This document shows, in pieces, positions 7,287-62,547 of a stretch of DNA of 64,000 nucleotides; within the stretch, counting starts at the first letter, position 1, and every line of letters begins with the position of its first letter. This stretch comes from Podarcis bocagei (taxonomy: Eukaryota): assembly GCA_964188305.1 (NCBI GenBank), contig OZ076895.1. One strand, 5' to 3'. Both the position numbers and the translations under genes were made by a program. The notes beneath the pieces were generated by a model that did not search any database, was not told where the DNA came from, and saw only the letters and a list, made by a program, of their open reading frames with translations.

Positions 7287-7422
7287 CAGGCATAGGCAAA
7301 CTCGGCCCTCCAGATGTTTTGGGACTACAACTCCCATGATCCCTAGCTAACAGGACCAGTGGGCAGGGATGATGGGAATTGTAGTCTCAAAACATCTGGA
7401 GGGCCGAGTTTGCCTATGCCTA
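7287..7422. mobile_element. Palindromic (fold-back) MITE, hAT-like
   Basis: aggcataggcaaactcggccctccagatgtttt...aaaacatctggagggccgagtttgcctatgcct; decayed relatives near 17690, 35950 and 46920. Confidence 0.85.
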
Positions 7423-18520: not shown

Positions 18521-18742
18521 CAACCCCCCACCCAACAAATGCTGATCATGTGTTTGCTGGGGAGGATATCCAGCACATAAATAATCTAGGTGGGGTGTGA
18601 CTTCTTCATATGTTCCTACTTGCCCCTTCATGCAGTCAAGCATTTTGAGTAGGATTTATTGGCGCAGTTGCTGGTAACAGCTTTCACATAGACAGCTGCC
18701 TCCCAGAACAGCACTATAACTGGTTTCTTTCTCCGTTTCCAG

Positions 18743-18850
18743 GCTCGTGTCATGGCAACTATTGGGGTTACGAGAGGACTTGGAGACCATGACTTGAAGG
18801 TGCATGACTCAAACATCTACATCAAACCTTTTTTGTCCTCGTCACCAGAG
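18743..18850 (+). CDS. PPM1H: PPM1H coding exon: ARVMATIGVTRGLGDHDLKVHDSNIYIKPFLSSSPE
   Basis: tccag acceptor, gtaaaa donor; 108 nt; PP2C motif VTRGLGD. Confidence 0.96.
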
Positions 18851-19047
18851 GTAAAACATTCACACTTTTTTTATAGGAACAGGACAAGGGACCTAAACTA
18901 TGGCTTTAAAAATGTTTGCAACATGTCTTAACCTGCTTGTGAAATGTTTAGGTGTCCACATGAAAAATGGCTGCAATGAACACCTTAAATAGGGAACATG
19001 GCTGTGGCTTACGGAAAAGATGGTCAAAACTCATTCCCCTGTCTAAG

Positions 19048-22165: not shown

Positions 22166-22565
22166 TGCATGACATGTTTGCAGGCTGAATGCTGCATTAG
22201 CAGATCCTGCCTTGAACCTTCCAAAGCTTCCAGATCAGCTAGGTCTGTTTTAAAATAAATAAGATGCCGAGTGATTTCCTGTACTACTTGATGAGGCTCA
22301 AAGTGTTGACTTAGAGGTGACTGCAAAACGAGAGAAAGCAGCACTTGGACATAGTGCTGGTGCAACTCCCCCTTCAGAAAGTAGTCTAAGTAGGTAAGAA
22401 TCTCCACTTAAATGTGTAGACTGTACACGTGGCCACATTTGATCTTAACTGCTAGGGAAACAAGTAGATTTTTTGGGTAGCAGAAATATACAGCATTCAT
22501 TAGGACACCCACAAAAACAAACCCTTGTTTCTCCTTCACCTAATGAGTTTGTTTTTGTTTTTCAG

Positions 22566-22717
22566 GTGAGGGTATATGATCTTCTCCAGTATGAGCATGG
22601 ACCTGATGATGTGTTGATCTTGGCAACAGATGGACTCTGGGATGTACTATTAAATGAAGAAGTGGCAGAAGCAGTCACTAATTTCCTGCCAAACTGTGAC
22701 CCTGATGACCCCCACAG
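22566..22717 (+). CDS. PPM1H: PPM1H coding exon: VRVYDLLQYEHGPDDVLILATDGLWDVLLNEEVAEAVTNFLPNCDPDDPHR
   Basis: ttcag acceptor, gtttgt donor; 152 nt; PP2C metal-binding motif DGLWD. Confidence 0.97.
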
Positions 22718-23159
22718 GTTTGTAATCTCTCCCTTTTATATTTCCTTAGCAAGGTGCTTTTCAGATTCAGACTGCTTGCCAGGAATGTGTTGTTGCCTTT
22801 GCAGTGCTTCCACTGATCAATATTAGAAGCTTCAGCAGGAACAAATGCACGTTCTGAAAAGCTTTATTCCAATTAGGTCCTAAGGAGAATGAGTTGCTTG
22901 AAAACTACTTCAGCAGTTTTGTAAAGTTGCCTTGACAGTTGCATTCCAAATTTGCTACATTAGTGAATAAAGCATTCAGTAATGCACTGCTAGAGATATT
23001 AATCTCCAAGTTCCTGAAATGCTTTCTCATTTATCTGTTACTAAGAAGGGGCAGCCTCCCTTTTATTCCAGTTACGTATAGTGCGTTTTCCTGTTGCCAC
23101 TGCTTGCTTTCCTTATGTTTAGCATTGATTTTCATGAATTAATGCTTATTTGGCAGTTT

Positions 23160-23612: not shown

Positions 23613-24972
23613 AATATAATTCAGTTCAATTCCCCCCATCTTTTTTTTAAAAGTATTTTAAAGAATAAGAAGATCATATTCTTTTACCTTGAAATACAGC
23701 AGTTCTACCTTAAGTCTTTACAAATTGTGGATCTTGGTGTCTGATATATATGTATCTGTTTTAATTGCTTTTTCCAGTATTGACGATCCCTAGGTTCTTC
23801 TGCTATTGACTGCAAATTTCTACAGGATTTCTCTCAGTTTCTTACTGAAAAGGAGAGAATATCCAGCAGACAATAAGAATCTTCCATACATGGTACAAAA
23901 GTATAATCAACCCCTGCCCATAGAGTAATGTCAGACATCTTTCTATTAAGACCGATGGCACAAAGAGAAACGTGTCTCAGCGATGAGATCCTGATGCAAT
24001 TTGGCTTTCTGCACGGCTGATTGCATGTGCTAGAGAAAGAGAAAGAGATCTATCATGGGTCTCATTCATCTATCATTTTATTTGTATGTCACCTTTCCAT
24101 AGTTAACACCATGCTCAAGGCAGCTTACAACATGGAAAAATGTGTGTAATTACAAACATAACAAAAGTAGTCATAAACAATAAATAAAACTCATCAAAAA
24201 GTAAACAAATTGAACATTTTCCACATACATCTAAAAAGATCAACCACAACCCCTCTCCCAACTTACTTCTTAAGAACTTAGAAAACCACCTTCCATCACC
24301 GTCAGGCCACTGGTTCCTTTTGCTCACCTGTTGTATACACTGGCAGCAGTTTTCCAGGGAGCCTTTGTATATCCACCCTGGACATGTTTACCTCAAGAAC
24401 CTAGGACCATCTGCCACATGTAAAGGATGTGCTCTACTACTGAGCTACTGTATGCTCCTTCCTCAAACGTTCTTACAAAAATGCTAAAGCTTGATAAAAT
24501 AGTTATGATCTCTGATATGGATAGGACTTTGGAAGAAGGAATGGTTAAGGTTTACTGTTTTAGACTGCTGCAAGTTCTCCCACTGTGCACAAATCGAATG
24601 TTGGGGCAGTGTGGCTGTTCATAACAACTGTGCTTGACATGTGCAGTTATCCTTTTCTGTCCAACTAAAAGTGGATTTACACTGTCGGGTTCTTCCACAT
24701 GATCAGGTATCCTTCCTGCACCATTGTAAAACAATCTGTATTGCAGCCTTCCCCAACTTCTGGACGACTGGGTTGGAAAAAGACAGCCATACAAGCAGAG
24801 GGGCTGGCAGGCTTTTCAGTTTTGACTGGTCTGTAAAATAGAAACACAAATCCTGCACTGCAAATCTTATACTTTTTGAGAGGATATATGGAATGCTTTC
24901 CTTGCCCAGCAAGTAATAAACCTTTACTATTATACAACATCTGTAATCTGTGACTGTTTCTTCTTCATGCAG

Positions 24973-25120
24973 GTACACATTAGCAGCTCAGGATTTGGTA
25001 ATGCGAGCCAGAGGAGTGCTGAAAGACAGAGGCTGGAGGATATCCAATGACAGACTGGGCTCAGGAGATGACATTTCTGTCTTCGTCATTCCTTTGATAC
25101 ATGGAAACAGAATCTTGTAA
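24973..25120 (+). CDS. PPM1H: PPM1H last coding exon: YTLAAQDLVMRARGVLKDRGWRISNDRLGSGDDISVFVIPLIHGNRIL*
   Basis: tgcag acceptor; PP2C motif GSGDDIS; TAA stop at 25118-25120. Confidence 0.96.
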
Positions 25121-29915: not shown

Positions 29916-31775
29916 GTAGTATTGCTGTGAGCTTCTTTTCTGGGGCATATAGCTGGTGAATGCTGTCAGTGAAAATATGATATAGTCTACAATTCCCCAT
30001 CCTTCAGCATAGGTACATACTGTACCTTCTTTTTAAATTTTTCCATTTGTTAAGTTCTCTTGCAGTGCATGTTCAAGCACTCAGCTATCAATTCTGTTTG
30101 CTGAAAGAACAAATTGGGAATAAGCAGAGAAGGAAATTGACATAAGTAAAATCACCTAACTGAATTCCAGAGCAAATGCCCAGTTGGTCGTTACAGATTT
30201 TTGTATGATTTGGGTCAGTGGAGTGCTGCTTGTAAAATTGCAAAGAAGCACATAATGAGTGAACAGCTGTTGTTTCTACATATGGACAAAATTACTTTAA
30301 AAAAGTTTGTACTCTGTTACTGTCAAGTGAATAATATGTCAACTAGCACTTTATGTTTTTATAGTATTTTAATTGCTTTTCAGTAATTAAGTCAGAAGTT
30401 AGAAGATAAATGCTTGCTTAATAATAAAACTTGGAGAAAGCTGTAATGCACATTTCTGAAGTTTGGCTGGTTACTGAAACTCAATAATGCAGCTAGCTAC
30501 GAATTCTGTTCTGCAAGTGTATTATAAATACTGGCAGATATCAGGGAGAGCTTTAAAGGGATTCTGTGTTTCTAAATAATTGAAAGGATACTAAAAATGG
30601 TTTAGACACATCAAACAATACCAAGAAGCTTAAAAACTTTAGTTTTGTATAATGCTGAGACAACAAAGGGAAATGGGAATATTTTAGCTCCACGTGCAAG
30701 GCTTAAAGCTGATGAAGAAGGGGTGGCTTAGCTACAAGGGAGAGGGGTGAGAAAAAAAGATAACAGCAAAGGGTTAGTCAGTGCTCTCCTTTCCAGTGTG
30801 TATAGTAACAGGGGCTTCAGCAGGGCCCTCTTATAACTTTCACTGAGATAAACAGTGATTTGCCTGTGCAGTGAAGTGAGCAGATGGATTGTATAATAAG
30901 GGGAAAGCTCTGCTAAGCTTGGTTGATGGTCCAAGGTGGAGGGGGGGATGACTAACTATAGCCCATGGAAGAATCAAGGTGAGATGTATAATGTATGATG
31001 GAGGTTCTCCGTATCGGAGGCTTTGCTGGGGCCAGATAGAAATTTCCAAAGGTTAGATTTACCCTTGTTACCTATTCATAAACATTCTGTTTCAGGAGAA
31101 TCCACCACTGATTACAGAATCACATTGCAGGTTGTCTGAGTTTATTTTAAAAGCAGTTTCTTGAGCAAGGCAACCATAGTTCTTTCTCTTTCTTTTAAAA
31201 ATAATATTATAACCCACAGAGCCGTTTCCTATGAAGGCATTGGTTGAATATATAGGATAAATATTTCTCTTTCATATTGTTGTTTGTACTTGCAAATATC
31301 CATGCAAGTTGGCAAATATTTCATAATAGGCACTACTGTTTGTTTTGAGAATTAGTTCCTAATATGTGGCACAGTTCTTTGAATTCAACATATACATATA
31401 TTTTGAGAGGGCATTGTTGATGCTGGCATATATTTAGTATAGATTTATGAGGTACTCAGACTGAGAATGGACTAGAATGTTTCCCCATTGTTTTAATTTT
31501 ACAGGATCAAAATTATTTAACATTGCTCTGGAAAACAAACTGAAAATTAACATTTGCTGAAGAAGTAAATTCCTAACGTGTATGTGACAATAAAAAATAT
31601 GGTATGTAAAATGCATTACTCCCCAGCCTTTTCTAGCAATTGTGCTATCAGCATAAGCATTTCAGCTTGCCAGACAAAATGACACCCCGCCCTGCCATCT
31701 TCCCCTGGGGTGTTGTTCTCTTGACCCCTGCCCCCACCCAACTTAGAGGAGGGAAAGCCCAGTTGTTCTATCATA

Positions 31776-32100
31776 AAGGTAAAGGACCCCTGGACGGTTA
31801 AGTCCAGTCAAAGGCGACTATGGGATTGCAGTGCTCATCTTGCTTTCAGGCCAAGGGAGCCGGCGTTTGTCCACAGACAGCTTTCCAGGTCATGTGGCCA
31901 GCATGACTAAACCGCTTCTGGCGCAATGGAACACTGTGGCGGAAACCAGAGCACATGGAAATGCTGTTTACCTTCCTGCCGCAGCAGTACCTATTTATCT
32001 ACTTGCACTGGTACGCTTTCGAACTGCTAAGTTGGCAGGAGCTGGGACAGAGCAATGGGAGCTCACGCTGTTGTGGGAATTTGAGCTGCCAACCTTCTGA
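31776..32100 (-). mobile_element. Sauria SINE, 5'-truncated
   Basis: Homologous to the 787 copy; lacks the head. Confidence 0.88.
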
Positions 32101-35100: not shown

Positions 35101-38100
35101 TTCTAGCCATGGGTAACAGGTTTTATATAATTATTAGTTGTGCCAAACATTTATAAGCAATCTTTGTACATTAAAAAGTGTCTCCAGAAAAATTAAATAG
35201 ATCTTAGGTGAACCCAGTACTGCACATCTGTACCCACATAAGCAACTTGAGCAGAAGGGTGTTTCTGCCAAGGAGCCAAATCTAGCTAGGAGGATACCAA
35301 GAATGAGCACTTGTAAGAGTTTCTTAAGTGGCACAACTCTCATGCCTCCATGGCAGAGGTTTTCAATCTTTTTGAGTCCATGGCTTTCTTGAGCAGCTAC
35401 ATTATTTCTACAGCACCCCTGTGGGAATCAGGAGTCCAGTTATGTCACCCCTTGCCTGCAGAGGTGGTAGCCTCAACATTTTTCAAACACCCTCCCTCAG
35501 CCTCATCTCCTCTCCCCTCTCCTTAGGAGTCGTCTGGGCAGCCACAGTCCATTCTCTGAACTGCCCCACCCCCACCCCTGAGAGGTGCCTCCTCACACTG
35601 CCCACAGGGGCCTGGGAAGCACCCCCTGGCGAGCCCCAGAGGCACCATTCGTCTGGAGAGCTTGTAGCCAGGGCTGCTGCAACAAACAGCCGTGCAAGCC
35701 TTTAGGAGGCAGAGACATTCAGGGGGAACAGAGGGAGGGAAGGAAAGAGAGGCCAGTGTGTGCGTGCATGGTGAGGGTGCTGTTTACATGCATGTCCCTA
35801 ACCCCATCCACTTTTGAGCATTCACACATTCAGGCATTAAGAATTTACAACTCCGAACAGTAAATTAAGGAAACCCTACAAATTAACCCACATTGTCTCA
35901 TGAACTATTAATACAGAAATGGGAAACTTGTAGTACGCCTGTTGTTGGGCTCAAATTTACACCAGGCCCAGCCAGCATGAATAAGTCAGGGATGATGGGA
36001 ATTATAGTCTATCATCTGGAGGGCCTTAGACAATTCATATTTGCATCAATGTATCATAGTATCTAGGGAACTCCTTCTCGTCACCCTAGCTTGAGATTAG
36101 ATGGGCGAACAGGGAGAGGACCTTTCCTGATCTGGCACTCCCTCTCTAGGTATTTGGCAATTCCACACCATATAGTCAACACATATGCAATACACGACTT
36201 TCCCAAAAAAATCCTGGAAGCTAGTTTAAGGGTGCTGAGAATTTTTAGCTCTGTGAGGGGTGAACTACAGGTCCCAGATTCTTTGGGGGAAATCATATAC
36301 TTCAAATGTATGGCATGACCCCGTCCATTATTTGCCTGCCATAACCACAGCTAGTCTTCAAGGACTTGGGCCAAGACTAGCTCTTTCTACCAGGTATTGG
36401 AAAAGTAGATTTACTTCATTGTTCCCTGTGGTTGTGGTTATTTTAAATCTTGTATTATATATAATTTATTATTATAGTTTTATTTTGTAGTAAGCACTTT
36501 CTTAACAAATTACAGGAAGGTGAAGTATACAAAATCAAATAATTGCATCCACCTTTTTATCCCCACTGACAATTCTGAAGAAATGCCAACAAAACACCTG
36601 AAAGAGACATCTCAGAACACTGATGAATATTCAAATATTCAAGCATTCTTTCCCCATTCATAAGATGGAATAATCTGATGAATGTATTATGCAGCATTTC
36701 TGAATGGTTTGGCTTTATGGTAAACTCTGTGATGAAAGGCAGGCAGGATGTGATATACTTTAATAAATGGGTAGACTCACTATACTAGTTAAATCTATGT
36801 CTACAACTCAGTATTTTCCCCAAGTACTCAAAACCTTGCTCTCAAGCCATGCAGATTTCATAAATTGCAAGTTACTAAAACCACTTGGAATTGTGTAGGG
36901 AAATGTAACATTTAACAGCACCTTCAGCACCAATTATGTTCTTAACTACACCTACATGTAATAGCTGCTCACTTTAAACCCATCCTGTGCAAGAGTTCTA
37001 CTAGCCCATCCCACTTTCCTAAAATGCCCTCTAAAATAATTAGCCTGAATGGAATGGAAGGCAATTTTAGTACAATAGCTTGAATATAGGTTTAGTTAGT
37101 AGAAAACTATTTTGTTCATGGAAGTGGTTCCCAACTTAGTAGTGAGAAAAGTGAACCCAAGTCCTGTAGGGCTGTTTCTAAGGTCAGTCTGTGTCTTCCT
37201 TTTTCAACATATTTCTCATACCCTGACAGTGACACGGAAAGAAGTAGTTTCTGCAAGAGTTCACAGAACAGGACTAATACATTTTCTCATCCTTCTCAGT
37301 TCTTTGGATTTAAGCCCTTATTTCTGCTTCAAGAAGATCAATGTAATACTGAATTCAGCCCCAGGCATTAACGCCTTATCTACTGATACCAATGAAATAC
37401 AACTGCAAATACCCGAAAAGGTTATTTATAAGCAAAACTCACGAGAAAGAAAAGCTCCCATTCAATTCATTTAATGAATTTTAAATTGTGTCTAGTTCCA
37501 TGCAGTTATGTTGCTTTTGTGCATATACCTTTAAAAAGCAGTGCCAGCTGTATAACTGCTAGGATTAAATTATAGAACTGTGCTGTCTTGCTAGTGGTAG
37601 GGAATGATGGGCACTAGTCTGAAAAACAGAAGAGCAACTAATGACTTAGCTATGGGAAAGATATCTACTTAAGAGCAAAACATAAATTGCTCCAGTCGTT
37701 CAATGCTTTGTAAATTGCAGAACTAATTATATTCTTCCCAGCCCTGGAACTAGGGAGGGGAAGAAGATTGTACTCAATATATATCTACCTATTTATGCAC
37801 ACATACAGAGAAGAGTTACTTGCAACCCACAAACTGCTTTTACAGTGAATTCTACCCTATTTTTGTATACTACACTAATGGAATAAATTTTGTTGAGAAG
37901 CGCTGAGCATTTTGCCGAATTCACTAGCAGCTGAAATGAACATCACTCCTAAAGCTATGTAAAGTTCATGAAGTGTTGCACTCAGAGAAATTAATGGACA
38001 CAACCAAAGTTCTCTCTTACTTGGTGTAGGAGTCTGCAGTAAAGAGCCACATCCAATCATGTGCTTCAAACTGCATTACAAAGACAGTTTGAACTTGGAT

Positions 38101-40094
38101 GAGTAAATGTGCATCATAGTTCCCTGTTGTGTGCAAAAATCTGATTGGTTTCCTAACTGATGATGCTGAAACTTTTAATATTTAAAAAGCAATTTCATCT
38201 GAAGTACAATCCTGACCTCACGTTATGATTTACAAGGAATTTTTTGCACATTTTCAAAAATCCTATATTCACTCCCCATTCTTATGGGATACTGTTGTCA
38301 GCTGTCACATCATTCCAACAATACTACTGAGAGGATGAATGGCCAGAATTTTTTTCCTGAGGTTTCATAAAATTATTCAATGAAGAAATGTTTGTGTTCG
38401 ATGAATCTTTCAAAAAATTAATCATAAAGTTTCCTTGTGTATCCTGAAAGTACTTTTTTAAGTGTTCTAGATCCAAGTTTAAGCTACATCTTTTAGATAA
38501 AAGTGAAAAATAACACGTTTGCCACAAAGACTACATTTTCCCATTACTGCTCTAACTTGTGTCCTCAATTTATTTTTTCATCATATCTTCTTTAAACAGG
38601 CCACCCTACCTTACAGCTTTCTAAGTTTCAGGTGTTTTTTAAAACAAAGAAACTCACTGGAGCTCAGCATACAGCACCAAAGATATCAAATAAAGATAAA
38701 TGTGTTTTATTATATAAACTTTACAAATTAACGTATTCCTATCTTTTCATGATTTAGCCATACAAAGTTTGAAAAAAATAAGAAATCCAACACCTAACTA
38801 ATAAAGCATACAACACAGAGAGGATGTTGCTCACAATATTAAGTACTGAACAACGAACCTTTACAAGTAAAGAACCTATTGTTTTCCAATCTATAGCTCA
38901 GTATATTCATTTCAGCAAGGGCAAACACTAGTTTAATTAAGGAGCTTTTATATAGTGATCATACTAGTTTGTGTTTCATACTGGTATTAAAAAGCCTTTA
39001 AGATATTTTACCCAGAGTTCTTTCGCCAATTATTTTTAATTTTGTCATCTAATAATAGTGGAATTTGGGTAAATTGAGTTATATCCAACATGAATCATAC
39101 TCAAAAGTAGGTCCTCTGAAATCAATGGGCTGACTAATGCTGGATGTCACTATTTCACTTTACTTTTTATCCTAAGGTTTTAAAATATGGAGATACATAA
39201 TTCATGAAATATTAGGTGCTTCTATACATAAATTAAATATTAGTTAAATGATACACTGGAGGGAAAACAAACTAGTTAGACAGCTATGCACTTACCTGGT
39301 AATGTCCCATTATAAATGGGACTCTTGAGTAGACATGTGTAGATTTGCACTGTTAATTCTAAAGCTGAAGACTATAGCATCTGTCATTAGGAAGGCATGT
39401 GACGTTATGTATTATTCTTACAAAATATTAGGTATTGATATCATTGTCTTATTCAATGCAACTACTGTTTTTCAGTATTTTTATATGCAGTGCAGAATAA
39501 ATGCACAGTCGTTAAAATTTATGAAACCTCATAAATGGTGTTTTATTGATGTCATTTCCATAACCAGAATTCAAACAGTAATTGCCACTCATTATATCCC
39601 AAACTCATCAGCCCAGCAACACAATCTAAACATATGTCCTTGCTGGTGCAATACAAGTATCAAAATTTCACTATAAATATGTAAGTGCCCATCTAAAGAT
39701 TTGTTGTATGAGATGCTGTCTATTCAGCACATGCAAGATGTACAATAAATTTTAGCTTTCCACGGATATGTAATAGATAACAACAAACAGGCATTTTCTT
39801 TAGCCAAATTAATAATCTGAATAGAACAGTATCTGTCAGGACGTCACTAAGGAATACAACATGCAAAACTGACGTAAATACTGTGCATTTCAAAATTCAG
39901 ACATTTCCTGAGGAAATAAAAAACTGGAAAATGCCACATTTCAGTTGTGCGAAGCCAAGCTCTGCAAAGCCATATACTGAGAGGCATTAAACACACAGAA
40001 ACAGCAAAGGCAAGCTTGGTTCTGTTGCCACCCCTCCTTCAGTATGCAAGTAATCCCTGGGAAAACAAAGGGGATTCCCATTGTCATTGTCTTC

Positions 40095-40226
40095 NNNNNN
40101 NNNNNNNNNNNNNNNNNNNNNNNNNNNNNNNNNNNNNNNNNNNNNNNNNNNNNNNNNNNNNNNNNNNNNNNNNNNNNNNNNNNNNNNNNNNNNNNNNNNN
40201 NNNNNNNNNNNNNNNNNNNNNNNNNN
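40095..40226 (-). ncRNA. MIRLET7I: Inferred let-7i microRNA precursor, inside the 132-nt N block (sequence not visible)
   Basis: Conserved MON2 / let-7i / PPM1H synteny; ~1.1 kb downstream of a minus-strand CpG promoter; minus-strand 3' flank gaagacaatgacaatgggaatcccc resembles the mammalian let-7i 3' flank as I recall it; the gap is large enough for a ~85-nt hairpin; no let-7 mature sequence seen elsewhere in the window. Confidence 0.75.
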
Positions 40227-41650
40227 CCTGGAAGGAGAGAAGAAAGGCGGGCATGTTCCACCCACAATAAAATGAAGAGCCCAGAGAGAGAGAGAGGAAG
40301 GAAGGAGCCATGGCAAAACGGTTCGGGCTCTTTCTGACGGTCCTCTTGTCTCCTTTATCTGCAGCAGACATCAGCCAGACTCCCTTCTTTGCGAAGGGCA
40401 GGAGGAAACCCCGCCCAGAGCGCGCATTACAACGCCGCCGCCGCCGCCCCCCACCTACCCCGCCGCCACCCGCTCTGCCCTTTTCCTTGCATGACCTGAA
40501 ACTGACGCGAGGGAGTCTCGTTTATTAGGTACATTACAGGCCACAGCTGGTGCAGTCCCCAGGAGCTTAATTGTCAATCGGCGCGAGAAGCAAAAGCGAA
40601 GGCGCGGGAGGGGAGGAGGGACAAGGGGGAAGGAAGGAGGAACAAAACTGAGGAGAAAATTCACGCTCCCATATTCCTAGACACTCAATCGCCTTCGCCT
40701 CAGCTTTAGGGCATCGTTCCGCGGCGGAGAGAGAAACAGGGACCGGTGCCCTCCCCTCTCAAAATTCGAACATAACCGTTGCAAGCTTCTCCCCCCCCCC
40801 CACCAACCGCCCGAGCGCGCGCGCCGGCCCCCCGAGGGTATAAAAGGCGGTGAGGCGCTTGACGAGGCGCCATTCCTGGCGGCTGAGGGAACACGATGGC
40901 GCTTGCCGCCTCACGCGCCGCCGCCGCCAATCGGATAGACGAAGGCGGGAGAGAAGGAAGAACACGGTTTTTTCGGTCCCTTCCTTTCAGGACAGCAGTT
41001 AAATTCTGCTCCTCTAACGGCGGCGAAAGCATCTTCCTCTCCGCGCCGCCTTCCCCACCCCCCGCGCTGTATCGCAGTGAAAGACGCCGCCGCCGCCGCG
41101 CTCCCGCCCTTTCCGAGGCTCCGCCGATTTCCCTTTCTCCGGAAGGATGAGAAAAGCCCCCCCCCTCCCTCTTGGCGCGCCCCGTCATCCAAACCATAGA
41201 GATGGGGGAAAGGGGGGGGCGCGACTACTCACGCTTTGTCCACGTGACTAGTAGGCCTGGCCCGTCAGAAAGCCTTCCAGCGCCATCTTGAACAAGAACA
41301 AACCGGCAACGGAGCGAGGTTGCGGGGGATGGGATGGGAGGTCGGTGCTCTCGACCTTCTCTGCTGCGGCCCCCGAGGAAAAGACGGCGCCGGTCAATTA
41401 ATCCCTTCGGGCAAACAGGAACTCGCTTTAAAGCCCTTGCCTCAAGGAATGCTGGGAAATTGGATGTGTTCCCCCCTCCCCTTTCTTCGCGTGAGGAGGA
41501 AGAGCAAATCTCGGCGCGAAAATATAGAGGGGTGTGGGCACCTGACGACCAGTCTCGCGCTCTGAGCGAAGTCTGCTGGGAAATGTAGTCCAGGACAAGC
41601 TAGGCCTAGCCGGGGAATCGAGTAAAATTTGCGTTCGCCAGGCGTTAAGT
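40227..41650. promoter_or_regulatory. CpG island / promoter of the minus-strand let-7i host (pri-miRNA) transcript
   Basis: Very high GC and CpG density with (GCC)n runs; YY1 motif cgccatcttg 41281-41290; E-box cacgtgac 41241-41248; no coding gene starts here. Confidence 0.85.
41233..41320 (-). ncRNA. Putative first exon of the let-7i host lncRNA (5' end approximate)
   Basis: Minus-strand CAAGATGGCG (typical of YY1 sites just downstream of a TSS), then a donor aagc|GTGAGT at 41232; matching acceptor ccgcctttcttctctccttccAG at 40228-40250. Confidence 0.55.
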
Positions 41651-42379
41651 TGCCTATCGATCTGCAAAGGGGCACAACAGATAAAAGGCGAAAAATACTG
41701 TTTGATACGGCTGAAATCCTAAAAATAAGCCACGCTAACCATAACGGGACTTTGAATAATCATGCACCATACTGTAATTTAACCCACTAATATATACAAT
41801 CTAAGACTGTTAATCACCTGCAGTGTAATGGACAAAGGTCGTCGTCGTTTTGAAATGCATTTAAACTCGTGTTTTGCTGTAAATAATTTCTAGGCGTTCT
41901 AAGCAGGCGACATGCAAAACGATAAGAAGTTAAAATGTATCACCCATATTAAAATAGTATGTGGAAAGATTTTAAAGGGAAACTAGTGAAATCCTATACA
42001 TGTCTACTCAGGGGTAAGCCTCATTGATAGGATTTATAACGTGAAATAAGTATTGGCTTGCAGCCTAAATCACAAAAAGGTGATCTTACCACCTCATTAC
42101 TACCACCATTAATACAGATAAGAGGCCAATTAATCAAAACTTCAAGCAGTGCACATGATATGCAAAAAAAGAAGCAGCAAAGACTTGGCTAGACTTGCTG
42201 AAATAAAAGTTTTTAGCAGGCACCTACAACAATATAGCGGGAACAACCATGCTTGCTGCTGTAACAGAAAGCCTCCCCAGAAGAGCTTAACACTAGCCCA
42301 TGTGGCACAATGTGTTTCCACCAAAAACTGAAGTAAGGCTTTGAAGCTAAAAACTTGAACACATTAGCAGCTAGCACCA

Positions 42380-43518
42380 ATATCCAAAAGTTGTTTTATT
42401 ATATTTTGTGCTGTCCATGCATGCTTCAGTAGCTGTCTTTAAAGTTACAGGCAGAAAAGTGAACTTGTACTCATAGTGCATAAATGATAAAAACAAGATC
42501 TATACAAGGAGTATACAGATTATTTACAAGGTTTACTGATATGGTAAGAGGCTGTGGATCCACAGAATCCAAAGCTTTCCTGTTTTGAACAGGAAGTAGA
42601 GCTGGGGGAAAACTACCAATGGGAGGGGGAAATTATTACAAAAGCAGCCTTAAGTGGCCAAATTAAAAAGCAGGAAATTCATTCCTCCAAGGATGCATGA
42701 ACTGACACTTCCCTCTACCTTGATTTCTCCCTCACATCTGACAGATTGCTCTGCTAAACATTCTAAAGACCAACATATAATGTACCTTTTCACACATTTA
42801 GATTAATCATCATAAATTCAGGCCAGATTGTGTGGTAAACTTAAATCAATCTTAAACATATCTGTACACTATATGGGGGACTTACCCATGTAAGTATGTA
42901 GAGAGTTTTAGCCTTACATTACTATGAGAAAATAAGAGAAAATACCAATTGTAATAACCAATTCAAATCAAATTTTCTATTTATGCCTGCTATTTTCTAA
43001 ACAAAAGAACATACAAACTGGTTGAAAACGATAAAAAAATTAATTTACAACTAAATCAAGATAGCATTAATTCAAATCATTGGCTCATATTGCTTCCTGG
43101 AGCAGGTAAGCATCAGAAAGACTATTATTGTTCTACAACACAGAAAGAAAATGTCAAGCTATCTGGCTGGCAAATAAGAATCATAATTTGAGAGCACATT
43201 GCAGAGCTTATGGTATGAGCTCATTGGGATTCTGGTGAAATACAAGATGGCATGTTCTGGAGGTAGTAGGAACAATGTCTCTTCCCCAATCTTTGTATCA
43301 AGCTTGCAGTATATACAGCACACGATCCACTGTAACAGTCAAGATGACTTCAAAAGGAAACAGGGCTTGGCATATCTTCCTTCTCAGAGGGTAGCAACCA
43401 ATCCTGGGCACACATACCGGTAATTGAAAGTAAGCACAAATGGTGGATAGGATAGGATTCAGCTAAATATGTTTGGGCTTGTAAGTGCAGACTTTACCAT
43501 GTTCATTTGTACTACATT

Positions 43519-45191: not shown

Positions 45192-45355
45192 TCAGGACTC
45201 TCCATTCTGTACCTTGGATGCTGGTGGGTGCATAAAGTCCTTAAAGGGAACTAAAGCTTCTTTGAGAGCAGAACAGACCTCTGAAGATGAGCAGGTGATA
45301 CATTCTACTAAAGTTGGATACAAAGCAATAACCTGTGCCCATGTGTTAGCATCAA
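45192..45355 (-). CDS. MON2: MON2 last coding exon: [54 protein letters not shown]
   Basis: tacag acceptor; TGA stop; recognised MON2 C-terminus. Confidence 0.96.
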
Positions 45356-46167
45356 CTGTAAAAAAATAAAAAGAAGTAATTTTATAGTGTATTCTTTAAA
45401 AAGTATTTTTCCACCTTGTCCCCAACCCTGAGATAAAGAGAAAGATACACATCATCCACAGAATAACAAAAAGGTAAATGCAGATGCCCTCTCATACCTG
45501 CCCAGTTAATACACGTAACAGGAAAAACAGTATGTTTAGCCAAAGACCACTGCAGCTTAGATTCAATAAATACATATGTTTTCTCAGCGTCTTAATTCCT
45601 TTGCTAAATTGCCATTTATTCAATAGTAGGCCTAGGATTGTAACCTTACGTTGATAGCTGAATGATAGAATCTGTGTACACTTCCTATGAAACAAGCTCG
45701 CACAGTTTGAAACATTAGCCAGTTCATACTTGATTGTGGACTCCGGAAGGCTAAAACAACCAGACTGAATTGACTAATTACATCCCTAGACCCATCATTT
45801 TACTGTGGTATCCAAGAGCTGTAAAAATTAGAACTTGCTTAGAGATACATTTGTTAGAAAATGTACAGGCAAATCTAATGAACAGGCAAATCTAACTATG
45901 AGTCAACATAAAGAATTATGCATAGTATTTAAGACTATTCAATAAGTAAACTCTATAGTAGAGGTGCGCCTGCCTTGCCCCATGACAGTGAGTGCCTGGG
46001 GCGTGTTGCTTTTACTGTAGCTGGGCCCCTTTATTTAAAATTTGTGGGTGCCTGGGCACCCAGAGCCCCACATAGTTGCCGACTATGGTATAGTACTATA
46101 AGGGGTCATCTCACTGAGAAACGTATGAAGATAAGTAATTTATACACATGGTTTTTATTTTACTTAC

Positions 46168-46250: not shown

Positions 46251-47633
46251 CTATAAAAAGAAAAACAAAATCAGAAGTGAATTTAAGTTCGAGGAAAATT
46301 TGATTAACTTGAGTTTATGCAAAATAAATTTCTGCAATGATTTCTAACAAAATCTAAAACTGAACTTTAAAAACTATTATATTTTCACCGTGACATCTCA
46401 ATTTAGGATGGATTATATCTAGTTTCATTTTCAGAATGAAATACGAGAGCATTATAAATATCAATAGAGACGTCATCAAGTGAATGTTGACAGGATTCCA
46501 ACCAAGATGGATCCCATGAAGAAAAAGGAGCAGATATCAAATGCTCAGGGAAACTGAAGTTTGCAGGAGTACAAGCAATTGGGGAGCGGGGACTAAGGTG
46601 GCACCCCTTGCAAAAAAAGAGAGAAAAGCTCTGAGTATTATCAGCAGCTACAGAATGCCGAGTGTCTGCTGGTCAAAACAAAACAAAACAAAACAGGAAC
46701 TGAACTGGGGGAATAACCTAGAAGGCATCACTAGATAGCTTGAAGCCTGAACAAGAACACCCCATATTGCAACTGTTCTGCAGTTTCCACTTGTTTCTCG
46801 TATACATCATTTTTAGGAATTTAAAAATACTATGGCAGGGATACAAATAATTTTGCAGTGAGCAATACCCAGACACGTCATTTGGAAATTAAGGGATATT
46901 TCAAAAGCAGCTTCCATTAGGGCAGGTATTGGGAACCTTTGTCCCTCCCAGATGTTGCTGAACAACTCCCATCAGCCCTGGCAAAGCATGGCCAATGGCC
47001 CAGGGATGGTGGAAGCTGTACCTCAACAACATTGCCAATGGGGCATGGAAGGGCATTGGGCCATTCAAACAGAAGATCAAATCTTAGCTGATGAACAGGG
47101 AGTTCAGTCATGCTTGGTCACTATCTCCCAAACTGGTGAATTTTGACAGGTGGGAGTGATATCACCCACTTGCCAAACATGGCCCATGGGCGTAGGGGGA
47201 GATAAACAATTGGAACACTAGGCTGAAAAGGTTCCCTACCCCTAAACTACATAAAATTCATGCTCCGTTTTTGAATGCTTCTTAAAGAGTTGCTGTGGCC
47301 AAATTCACGGTGATTAATCAAAAAGATTTAACTGATCATCAGCATCTACCAAATCAACTAAGATTCTATTATATTTTTGTTATGGTCATTATATGTAGTA
47401 AACTAGAAGACATAGCTACTATTATTTTCAGGTGACCAAGATATACATATATACAAGCCTTTCAGCTACCAATGCTTTTGTAACAACATTCTTTTAGATA
47501 CCAGGAAAGGCACATGAGAACCCCAACACAAAAAGGCCTTAAGGAGGACAGCAACATACAAACCTTAGTAAGCAGAAATAAGCAGCTCCCTTAAACACAC
47601 AAACACACACAAAAAAAACACCACAGTACATAC

Positions 47634-55262: not shown

Positions 55263-55860
55263 TGCTCTGCATTTATTTCACAATAGAACATTTAAAAATA
55301 AGATCAAATAAGAACTCTCAGTACAATATTATCCTTAAATTACACTAAACAGATGGGAACTCAACTAAAATTCCACTCTGCGTAAAATACAATCTTATAT
55401 AATGTTATGGTTGTGATGGTGGTACACAATGCCAGTGCATGTGACAAAAAGAAGTGGATTTCAGGGTGTTGCAGGTGCAGAGCAGAGCTTAGTCTGAATC
55501 CTATGCTTTGTTAGATCTTCACTGTCCTTGTCAATGGCATAACATGATGTCATCAAAAGAAGTGGATTCACACACACTCCAACGTCTCCCTTTTCCACAG
55601 GTTAGACACCAATTCAATACTTATAAAGTATGTTTCTCACAGTGTTATGTAGTCTACAAGTAAGACTTATAGTAGTGTGTGACCAGTGGGAAATAAACTA
55701 TTCCTATGAGGGGTTGCCATCTTTTTTCACCCTGGGCGTCTCAAAATGTTCACATTGCACAGCAACATAACTGGTTCAGCAGTGATGGAAACTCGCTTCT
55801 CCTGTTTCTCAGTGCACTGCTTTCTCCTCAATATTACCAACCAGCTCATGATATTTATTA

Positions 55861-56218
55861 AAGGTAATGGTAAAAGGACCCCTGACCATTAGGTCCAGTC
55901 ATGGCAGACTCTGGGGTTGCAGTGCTCATCTTACTTTATTGGCTGAGGGAGCCGACGTACAGCTTCTGGGTCATGTGGCCAGCATGACTAAGCCGCTTCT
56001 GGAGAACCAGAGCAGCACACGGAAACGCCGTTTACCTTCCCGCCGGCGTGGTACCTATTTATCTACTTGCACTTTGACGTGCTTTCAAACTGCTAGGTTG
56101 GCAGGAGCAGGGACCAAGCAAGGGGAGCTCACTCTGTCGTGGGGATTCGAACCACCAGCCTTCTGATCAGCAAGTCCTAGGCTCTGTGGTTTAACCCACA
56201 GCGCCACCTGCGTCCCCC
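55861..56218 (-). mobile_element. Sauria SINE, full length
   Basis: Head and tail present; perfect 14-bp TSD catgatatttatta. Confidence 0.93.
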
Positions 56219-56901
56219 CATGATATTTATTACTGTGAGCTTATTCCTATAAGTAGGCATTCTTCTTTGTCTCTGTGTCCTCTATATTTATTACTTGAAA
56301 TAACTTTCCAACCCCCTCACACTGCAATGCAAACATAAATATGATGTATTCTATGCACATCAAGTGGAATAAGTGGCACCACAGTGAGGCTGCAGAATGG
56401 TTGCTGCGTTTAGCATGACACTCCTTCCTTCTTCATATGAGTATGGCTAATTCTTTATCAAAAGGCTGCTGGTGGCTCTGTTTTGGCTTCCAAGGCATTC
56501 TCTGTGTAAAGGGAGCCTTAAAGCTTACGGCTGAAAGTATCAGCTGCTGATTCTTAACCCATAAGCCACCTGTGCCTCTCACATAATCAACTTTGGCATT
56601 TTCTTTAAAATATCATACACAATTATTCTTGGTTCACTGTAATTCTGTATGAACGTCTGATTCAACAAATTTATGAAGATGACCTAGCTGCAAATGTAAT
56701 CTGCTGAAGTCACGTTTGAACAGGAAGAAACCTGCAGAAAGCAGAAAAGACAGGCCTGGAAGAGGCTCTCAAGGAGCAAAAGTACCTTATAAAACTATTA
56801 CCATCGCCAATTATATCTACCAATATTTAACCTATTCGCATTATAGATGGGCAATATGAAGTTGAGTGTCTGCCTTTCAGAAATAATTTAAAAACTATTA
56901 C

Positions 56902-57530
56902 CTTTTGTAAGACATCTAAAGCTGTTAGAACCGCTTCTTGCAAACTTGTTAGAACTGCCTCCGTGTATGATGGTAGGATGAAAGGGGATGCATCTGAACT
57001 GATTGGAACAGAAACTGCACCATGTAGAATAACACCCAATTTTTGGAGATCATCCATACTGAAACCTGTTTTGATGTGCTGGTAAAGGGCTGGGAATATC
57101 TGTATTAAAGCTGTTAGAAAAGGCTGGCTGGGGATAAAAGTCATTTTATCGCAAGAAACTGGAGGCTTTGTGCTTTCTGAGCCAATCCTAAACCAGCTGT
57201 TCCAGGCAGCCCACCAAAGATTCAAGTCTTCAATTTCATCTGTTATTACAGGAGGTTCTGCAACGTTATACCTTCCAATCCTTTCTCCTATAGAATCAGT
57301 TCTCATAAAAGATCTTCCAAGGCCAGTGGCAGTCACTGTTCCTATGAGGACAGGCACAGGCATATTAATAGCAGGTGGTGTGTCAGGTTTTTCAGTTTCT
57401 CTAACAGGGGACACAATTTGTAAGATTTCCTGAAAGCTTTTCAAAGCAGCCAGAGAAACTTCGTTGTTTTTGCTGAGTGCAGCTGACTGGATGTGATCAA
57501 GAAGGACATCCCAAGCTTGAGAAAAATCTC
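56902..57530 (-). CDS. MON2: MON2 large exon: [19 protein letters not shown]...[12 protein letters not shown]
   Basis: GT-AG; 629 nt; overlaps the 205-aa ORF 56827-57444. Confidence 0.97.
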
Positions 57531-58095
57531 CTGTTGGGGAAAAAGAAGTTTCAGAAAGCTGTCCATTTCATTATCATGCTCCCCCCCTCCTTTTTCTCCT
57601 TTTTAAAAGTGACTTTTAGTAAGTGGCATAATAATGATGATACATCGTAAGAAAAAAGCTCAGCAGGAGAAATCAGAGGATAGGTGTGCTACATAACCAA
57701 GAACACACTGTTACAAGGCAGCATTTATGCCTGCCAAAGATCTGTGGTTACAGAATACGTAGTATATTATTTGCACTTATTAGTTGCTTTTCTTTTTTTA
57801 AAAAAATGTAACTCAAAGTGATTTACAAAAATAGCACATTTGAAAAAAACTAAAACAGAGTAAAAGCTAAAAATGCATTTGTATTTATAAAAAGTCAGGA
57901 GTAGAGTACCCCACCCTCTAGAGGAGGCCAGATAAGGCCAGGCAACCTGTTGTGACCTGTTCTGAGATTATTTTATGATGAATGGTGGGATACAAATCTT
58001 AATAAATAAAATAAATCAACCTATAACTGTGGGATCTTCCCCTGCCCAAGTAAAAAATATTCACTGGCCATAAACAAGCAAAGAAGACATTATAC

Positions 58096-59368: not shown

Positions 59369-60465
59369 CTGCAAAAACAAAGAATGCATCTTCATAAATT
59401 ATGTTTACAGAGCACAGAGAAGGGTGGCAACCATTCTGTTGAACTAATTACCCTAAAAATTGTGCCAAGCTCCATGCTAGTACTAGGTTTGCTGGCTAGT
59501 TTTCACATTTTTATGCAGGAAGGTTTTGGGAAGTGTTGCTGGAGTGCTAAGTTGAGTTCCCTTTTAAATGGGTTTTTATGGTAGCTGGTTTTAAATACTA
59601 CTTTAAAGAGCGAGGTTGTCTGAATTCTTTGATGCTGCTTTGGGTTTCATTTTTAAAAAATAAAGGAACAAGTGTAAATGAATGAATGAATCCAGCAGCA
59701 AGCGGTTACATCTAAGAACATATTCTGGTTGACCTGTGAATTATAATCCTGAACAAGCAATAAATAAAAGACCAGGCTACAATTTCAATCCTGCTGCACA
59801 CTTAACGATAAACCATATTTTATTTGGGACAAAATAATACTCAAAGTATGTCATGCTGATGCTCCTCTTACTCATTTCTGGCAAAGAAGGTCTTAGAACG
59901 GTTGTGCTCATTATTAATTTATACAGGACAGAACCTGTTACTTGAAATGCTTTAGTTTTCCAAAGAAAGACTTATCTTTCATCTCAATGGACTCAGCTTT
60001 TCCTACCAGGTGCCTGACTCTAACTAATAAGCACAATCCAGAGAAAGTAGAAGTGGCTTAAATTACACCAAAAATCAATGGAAATTGACACTTAACTCTC
60101 CCTTGAAAGCTGTGTCCAATCAGTTCCAAAAATCTCAACACCATAGAATACGTTTTCTGGAACTTGCACACCAACTCCTTCTATTTTGTATCAATGAATC
60201 AGGAATTGTATTTCTCAATATCTGAAACATAAAAACCTGGGAGCTGCCAGTTGTTAAGGAGTTGTAGCTCTGTCAGGGGTAAACTACAATTCCCAGGATT
60301 CCTTTTTTTGGGGGGGGGGATGTATGGGGTGTGTATGCAGTCCAAGTCTCACAGAGCAATCCTATGCACATTTAGTTAAAAGTCAATCTCTCTGTTAAAT
60401 TATGCGAAATAATGCTAAACATTAGAAAGTAAAGTTCACAGCTAGGGGTTAAACTAAACACTCAC

Positions 60466-60628
60466 CAAGAGACCAATTGATGTTAAGCTAATGTTGAGTT
60501 CTTGATTGTGAAGCCCAAAGCTTCCAGCAACATCTACAACAATCTGTAGGCAAGTACATGGCATCGTTGGCAAGAAGTCAGTCACAACCAACTGTAGGCA
60601 CTGGAATGCAGTCCTTATTAGAGACTCT
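60466..60628 (-). CDS. MON2: MON2 exon: [24 protein letters not shown]...ISLTSIGLL
   Basis: GT-AG; 163 nt. Confidence 0.96.
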
Positions 60629-60834: not shown

Positions 60835-61870
60835 GGGACGTGGGTGGCGCTGTGGTCTAAACCAGTGTTTCCCAACCTTTTTTGGGCAAAGGCACACTTG
60901 TTTCATGAAAAAAATCTCGAGGCACACCACCATTACAGCCCTGTGACGTCAGCGCGCAGCGTCACGCCGGGAGGGACGCACGAAAGTGTAAGTTTCAATT
61001 TTTTCCCCTCCCCCTTGCCTTCCTTCTGTGCCAACCGCCAAAAAGCCAAGAATCGCGGGACCGCCGGCGGAGGGGGGGAGGGCGAGCGGAGGCAGCGGCG
61101 AGCCCCGTTCCTCCCCATCTGCCCCATTCCGTGCAAGGAGCGCAAACAGGTGTGAGAAGGGGGTCAAACCTGCGGGTCGGCGCCGGGGAACCTCCAAGCT
61201 TTGGGGGTGGGGGGGGAGGAGGCAGTAAAGCGAGGCAGGAAGGAGAGCGCGGCTTGGCTGGGTGAGCTTTGGCAGGGGCAGGGAATGAGAGCCGCGAGGC
61301 GGGCGCTGCGGACGGAGGCGCTGCCCGCCGAGCTCGCAGGCAGCCAGGCAGGCAGACGGCGAGAGCCCCGCACTGGGCGGCCTCTCCTTGCCGCCGCCGC
61401 CCCGCCTCTCGCCGCCCGACTCGCCTGCCTCCCTCCAGGCAACATCTCGCGGCACACCAGGCAACATCTTGCGGCACACTAGTGTGCCGCGGAACAGTGG
61501 TTGAAAAACACTGGTCTAAACCACTGAACCTCTTGTGTTTGCAGATCGGAAGGTCAACAGTTCGAATCCCCATGACGGGGTGAGCTCGCGTTGCTCTGTC
61601 CCAGCTTCTGCTAACCTAGCAGTTCGAAAGCACACCAGTGCAAGTAGATAAATAAATACTGTTGCGGTGGGAAGGTAAACGGCATTTCTGTGTGCTCTGG
61701 CTTCCATCACGGTGTTCCATTGTTCCAGAAGTGGTTTAGTCATGCTGGCCACATGACCGGAAAGCTGTCTGTGGACAAACGCTGGCTCACTTGGCTTGAA
61801 GCAAGATGAGCACCGCACTGGATAGTCGTCTTTTATTGGACTTAACAGTCCAGGGGTCCTTTACCTTTTA
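60835..61870 (+). mobile_element. Sauria SINE interrupted by a hAT element
   Basis: Head gggacgtgggtggcgctgtggtctaaac at 60835, body resumes at 61522, tail cctttacctttta; TSD ccaccaaattat/ccaccaagttgt. Confidence 0.9.
60863..61513. mobile_element. GC-rich non-autonomous hAT (Charlie-like) element, 651 bp
   Basis: TIR cagtgtttcccaacc / ggttgaaaaacactg (13/15); perfect 8-bp TSD gtctaaac. Confidence 0.92.
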
Positions 61871-62371
61871 CCACCAAGTTGTATGGAACTGGCAAGTCTA
61901 CACATTGATGGCTTGACACATGTAATACCACCATTCTCTTCGACTTTCATATGACCATTATGCAATGTCTTGTATGTGTGGCATAGGTCATTCACTTTAC
62001 AGAAGCAAGAACAAACCGCATGCACTAAATACATTTAAATACATTTATGCACTAAATATATTTGAGAGTATTAGCTAAAAGGTTATAAAGTTTGGGTGAA
62101 AATAAGCAGCTTTTCTTTTCATATAAACACTAGGTGCAAAAAGATGAAGCTTAGAGGACATCAGAATATTTATTTTTTTTAGTTATGTGCTAGAGCCACA
62201 AAAAAACTTGTTACCCTAGGAATGAGGTTACTATATTTTGCACAATAATTTGGTGCAATAATTATATATAAAAAAGACTATGGAGCAGCACCACAAAGTG
62301 ACCTAAAAAACAGAAGCAGCAATGAAGATTAGCAATAGTAAATGTTTGCATCTTGGCTTCAAGAAACTCAC

Positions 62372-62547
62372 CCCTGATCACTTCTGATTGCTCCCATGAC
62401 TCCAAGTACCAAGGGCCACCCAGGCCCCAGACTGTCACCCTGGCTTTGCAAAATCTGTAGCACACATTCCAGTTGCTTGAGCCTAATATCAGGGTGATTG
62501 ATGTTTGACAGTTCTTTCAGTGGATTTAGAAGCAGCAACTGAAGTCT
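62372..62547 (-). CDS. MON2: MON2 exon: [59 protein letters not shown]
   Basis: GT-AG; 176 nt. Confidence 0.96.

Follow-up and report, generated by a model that had tools for sequence, protein, structure and literature searches.

In human, mouse and rat, let-7i is found with Mon2 upstream and Ppm1h downstream (PMC2632650). In the mammalian annotation the primary transcript, pri-let-7i, is unspliced, with CpG islands and start sites located 188-430 bp upstream of the precursor, and the poly(A) signal lies past the precursor 3' end, at ~530 bp in mouse and ~612 bp in human (PMC2632650). Conserved USF1 and ATF6 sites have been described ~1 kb upstream of the mammalian transcript (PMC2632650). 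The isolated let-7i locus has been traced through all available tetrapods (PMC3384580).

The stretch of DNA analysed here, hereafter the window, is 64 kb long and contains the genes that flank let-7i in mammals. PPM1H is on the plus strand and MON2 on the minus strand, and their 3' ends converge across a 20-kb spacer. A scan of the whole window found its sole run of N letters in this spacer, at 40095-40226; the length of this N block, 132 nt, is an estimate only. The spacer has a single CpG island, and the block lies at its downstream edge. The original prediction, which placed a single block of this size at the edge of a CpG island between the convergent ends of the two genes, was thus borne out by the scan, by the composition bins and by gene mapping, and the minus-strand letters that it quoted as leaving the block were found next to it on direct inspection of the sequence. 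Going by its position and by the architecture of the surrounding transcript, we consider it very likely that the N block hides the hairpin of a minus-strand pri-let-7i.

In order to define the gene neighbourhood, a 1701-aa MON2 representative (P0009) was compared with the window using tblastn. Its residues 826-1701 were placed on fourteen minus-strand pieces, running from 63591 down to 45195. The last coding exon (45195-45356, minus strand, including the stop) corresponds to residues 1648-1701 of P0009, and the translation ends in ...KVQNGES followed by the stop at 45195-45197. A large MON2 exon was identified further upstream as an open stretch of 246 aa (56830-57567, minus strand) matching Pfam Mon2_C, at positions 206-436 of 819, with an E value of 2.6e-101. 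For PPM1H, PP2C motifs were observed in the plus-strand pieces 18692-18928 and 22449-22823, and in the piece 24947-25117 48 of 49 residues were identical to the C-terminus of the PPM1H chains in the PDB (E 7.6e-26). The last coding exon of PPM1H, assigned on these chains, spans 24968-25120 on the plus strand, where the 5' limit is the start of the match only; the coding sequence ends in ...PLIHGNRIL, with a TAA stop at 25118-25120. The N block therefore lies, as expected for let-7i, between MON2, which is upstream and on the same strand as the inferred hairpin, and PPM1H, which is downstream and convergent. This order, claimed in the original prediction for let-7i on the MON2 strand, matches that of the mammalian loci (PMC2632650), and is shared with MIRLET7I on human chr12 and with the mouse locus on chr10.

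A second CpG island was observed within a MON2 intron, at 60900-61900 (GC 0.58, CpG o/e 0.72), between the exons at 62371-62508 and 60457-60627. It adjoins a SINE-like copy on the minus strand (~61519-61860), and may represent a promoter, either internal or antisense, or else GC-rich repeat sequence.

On the MON2 strand, the CpG island of the spacer lies directly upstream of the N block, an arrangement shared with the promoter of mammalian pri-let-7i. We delimit it as 40227-41700 and presume it to be the minus-strand let-7i promoter; its GC content is 0.51-0.71, with up to 15 CpG per 100 nt. In 1-kb bins the region 40001-42000 has a GC content of 0.52-0.58 and a CpG o/e of 0.83-1.02, against ~0.1-0.3 for CpG o/e elsewhere in the spacer. 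In 100-nt bins the CpG-rich part extends from ~40300 to 41700, so that it begins ~100 nt from the N block, and a CpG-island promoter within a few hundred nt upstream is what a let-7i locus would be expected to have. Nine ORFs from the island, its surroundings and the left flank gave no match in Pfam, and for this reason the idea of a protein gene having its first exon here was rejected. An E-box, CACGTG (41241-41246, no strand assigned), a site of the USF type, is located ~1 kb upstream of the N block, as in the mammalian loci. The same motif was present in 39% of shuffled islands, and its likeness to the conserved USF1/ATF6 sites ~1 kb upstream of mammalian pri-let-7i (PMC2632650) may be regarded as a weak parallel. 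We also noticed a TATAAAAG box at 40839-40846, in the middle of the island and on the plus strand, antisense to the inferred let-7i transcript; a divergent transcript running in the direction of the MON2 3' end may start from it.

The readable part of the window was searched for let-7 itself. The 22-mer of let-7i, with up to 3 mismatches allowed, had no match in the readable 64-kb window, and the 11-nt 5' part of this 22-mer had a single, chance-level match at 43259. Rfam gave no let-7 over the whole window, either at the gathering score or at E<=1, and none at E<=10 over 38-43 kb, and no truncated match touched the edges of the N block. The low-scoring Rfam matches (MIR1222, snoRNAs, mir-567) were far below their cut-offs and were set aside as noise. 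These searches uphold the earlier statement that the readable window holds no let-7 mature sequence. The family expected for the hidden hairpin, by position, is the let-7 precursor family, which we take to be RF00027 in Rfam. As cmscan reported nothing at the edges of the block, the hairpin, if present, must be wholly inside the 132 N. The locus would then share with mammalian pri-let-7i the presence of a single isolated let-7 member outside any cluster, and would differ from it in that the hairpin is written as N and in its host, which the SINE-like repeats and a weak mir-5408-like match suggest is probably a squamate.

On the plus-strand numbering, the left flank of the N block is the downstream side of the inferred transcript. 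A poly(A) signal, AATAAA, was found there on the minus strand (39542-39547), 548 nt from the edge of the block. Its coordinates in the minus direction are 39547-39542, and no other AATAAA or ATTAAA occurs on that strand in the 1055 nt downstream of the block. With a density in the spacer of 1.28 AATAAA/ATTAAA per kb, the chance that the first hexamer would fall in a comparable window is ~0.09. The distance of ~550 nt compares with 530-612 nt for mammalian pri-let-7i. Taken alone, the poly(A) distance and the E-box each lend modest support to the presence of let-7i.

RNA data from a closely related organism, designated organism A, were examined next to the poly(A) signal. Four runs were compared, on 37095-40094 only, with an internal silent stretch as control. 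An RNA contig of X1, 582 nt long and with a depth of 8.16, covers 39528-40094 and continues for 15 nt into the N block; elsewhere in 37095-39527 the depth of X1 was 0-3.7, with three short pieces at 2-3.7. At its other end, 39528, this contig stops 14 nt beyond the AATAAA, a canonical distance for cleavage, so that a transcript ends at a poly(A) signal which itself lies at the downstream distance expected for let-7i. A contig of X2, from another study and 1328 nt long, ends at the same letter as X1 inside the N block, 15 nt past 40094, and a contig of X8 ends 1 letter past 40094. From the AATAAA to the contig end inside the block there are 562 nt, which falls between the mouse and human figures. 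The contigs are unstranded, and their minus direction is inferred from the AATAAA alone. The minus-strand segment 39528-40094, between the edge of the N block and the poly(A) site, is accordingly taken to be that part of the primary transcript's 3' arm which can be read. Words of the left flank (39480-40094) were in addition found, at shares of 0.51-0.79, in twelve RNA-sized runs that belong to organism A and come from three studies; its DNA runs reach 0.82.

The shared end 15 nt inside the block, together with the poly(A) site 582 nt away, is as expected for a 3' product cropped by Drosha. In the mechanism that we propose, RNA polymerase II would start in the CpG island just to the right of the N block, following the mammalian locus, and would transcribe through the hairpin, after which the RNA would be cleaved and polyadenylated at ~39528. 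Excision of the hairpin by Drosha would leave a polyadenylated 3' fragment of ~580 nt, matching the RNA-seq contigs, and we infer that the shared contig end is the 3' cut of Drosha. The stem-loop of let-7i in miRBase is 84 nt long, and its pre-miRNA ~78 nt. The block could accommodate such a pre-miRNA together with its basal stem. Should the contig end mark the cut, the 132 nt of the block would fit 15 nt, a hairpin of ~78 nt and a further ~39 nt. The CNNC motif was absent from the sequence 16-18 nt past the putative Drosha cut. A decamer matching the NF-kB consensus GGGRNWYYCC on both strands was observed at 40070-40079, in the transcribed 3' arm and 16-25 nt from the edge of the N block; it may be due to chance.

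The contigs by themselves are compatible with a Drosha cut and with a transcription start alike, and contigs sharing one end letter could mark a sharp start. An ordinary assembly gap could then account for the data, with an unspliced non-coding RNA of 582 nt starting 15 nt inside the block and let-7i lost or located elsewhere in this lineage. The edges of GC-rich islands are typical sites of gaps in short-read assemblies, and among the raw reads of X23, three were placed on 37095-40094 and none on the 582-nt segment. Such a gap would leave unexplained its coincidence with the syntenic position of let-7i and with the mammalian poly(A) distance. A target of ~165 nt predicted from this distance would be overlapped by a random 132-nt gap in ~0.5% of placements in the 64 kb, or in at most ~10% if gaps favour CpG islands. 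A gap without let-7i also sits poorly with the report of let-7i in all tetrapods examined (PMC3384580), with the lack of any let-7 elsewhere in the 20-kb spacer, and with the finding that part of the flank upstream of the N block is itself contained in RNA runs. We therefore consider a gap without let-7i to be improbable.

This upstream RNA was observed in 40227-40620: four studies, covering two organisms, provide at least 14 RNA-sized runs that contain 0.23-0.67 of its words (0.23-0.31 in most cases), the ceiling in DNA runs of organism A being 0.69. Individual libraries hold both sides of the block: X7 contains 0.74 of the left-flank words and 0.23 of the right, and X13 contains 0.34 and 0.31. 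The presence of RNA from both flanks in the same libraries indicates that transcription probably starts upstream of the N block, and this favours an internal cut rather than a transcription start as the source of the shared contig end. Set against the DNA ceiling of 0.69, shares of 0.23-0.31 amount to roughly 130-180 nt somewhere within 40227-40620. If the RNA-covered part adjoins the N block, the start site would precede the hairpin by ~200 nt, a spacing like the mammalian one.

The architecture of the transcript may be viewed differently, with the hairpin in exon 2 of a spliced host rather than in a short unspliced pri-miRNA; the identity of the hairpin is the same in both cases. Exon 1 would occupy ~41226-41320, and the acceptor would be formed by a pyrimidine tract and CAG at 40227. 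A long run of pyrimidines on the minus strand does end in CAG|G at the edge of the N block, and a GTGAGT follows a YY1-like AAGATGGCG and the E-box near 41230-41290. Against this, mammalian pri-let-7i is unspliced and starts 188-430 bp upstream (PMC2632650), and the segment 40227-40620, which would be intron in the spliced model, is found in at least 14 of the RNA-sized runs at the word shares given above. The right-flank RNA thus argues against reading 40228-41226 as an intron, and we regard the spliced host as rather unlikely. The original prediction had placed let-7i about 1 kb into its host transcript. This part of it does not hold up well, as the mammalian start lies 188-430 bp upstream (PMC2632650) and the right-flank word shares agree better with a start close by than with an intron.

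Beyond the poly(A) site the runs differ. RNA-sized contigs of X2 and X8 cover most of the following 2.4 kb, at depths like that of the 582-nt segment, and those of X1 do not. This signal could be read-through RNA, a longer isoform, or DNA in the libraries, and X2 is weakened as an independent witness of the RNA end because it also covers the DNA beyond the poly(A) site. In this respect the locus is unlike mammalian pri-let-7i, since in some runs here RNA (or DNA) extends for over 2.4 kb beyond the poly(A) site. Within this region, contigs of organism A carry ~34 letters more than the window at 39132-39133, which X2 contains between the two sides of a joint and X8 as a loose end; we take this to be an insertion/deletion difference between close relatives.

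The N block could also be a scaffold join between non-adjacent pieces, with flanks from different places, and the base composition does jump from a GC of 0.33-0.48 on the left to 0.51-0.70 on the right. A jump of this kind is, however, what the edge of an island gives, and the neighbours on both sides are the expected ones, as are their order and orientation. Each flank is also contained in one and the same set of DNA runs (X15 and X16, with a share of 1.00) and of RNA runs (X7 and X13), and the architecture of the left-flank transcript fits a promoter in the right flank. A join of unrelated pieces is therefore very improbable. BLAST of one flank against the other for overlap or duplication gave only chance matches of 7-18 nt. 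Reading frame has no bearing on continuity here, because the nine ORFs compared with Pfam had no match.

Sequence divergence was also compared near the block. Across 37095-39527, ~1.1% of sites differ between organism A and the window, against a single site in the 472 nt next to the N block (Poisson P ~0.036). This low divergence mildly supports constraint on the sequence near the block.

The N letters may represent a deliberate mask of a near-invariant stretch identical to human, or a genuine break of the assembly at a GC-rich edge. A mask is possible because the near-exact coincidence of the block with an ultra-conserved element is what masking would give; a true gap is possible because GC-rich island edges also break assemblies. 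The data fit either, and the let-7i reading is the same under both. What the original prediction proposed, a minus-strand pre-let-7i under the block, is thus backed by synteny, by the lack of let-7 elsewhere in the window, by the poly(A) distance, by the ends of the RNA contigs and by RNA on both flanks, while the letters of the hairpin itself are N. It is most unlikely that the let-7i transcription unit (promoter, 3' arm of ~580 nt and poly(A) site) has been kept with the intact hairpin absent. If true, this would mean that a microRNA otherwise reported in all tetrapods has been lost or replaced here, and that the remaining RNA has another role.

If the let-7i reading is right, a known and conserved microRNA locus is hidden here by missing or masked letters, and the biology is already known rather than new. 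A search of this sequence would score let-7i as missing solely on account of the N letters, and a gene-presence call of this kind in the assembly is not to be read as a loss. The locus also illustrates that a hidden microRNA may be recognised unread, from synteny, from the geometry of promoter and poly(A) signal, and from the ends of RNA contigs.

Two further elements were observed in the window. A palindromic hairpin at 7313-7396 matched Rfam mir-5408 on both strands with 47 and 45.6 bits, against a gathering score of 90, and a weaker copy of it is present at 46952-47032; it is probably derived from a repeat rather than being a member of the curated family. A repeat of ~300 nt occurs in three copies that are 65-90% alike (781-1092, 31769-32095 and 55860-56161), and presumably resembles a tRNA-related SINE of squamate reptiles.
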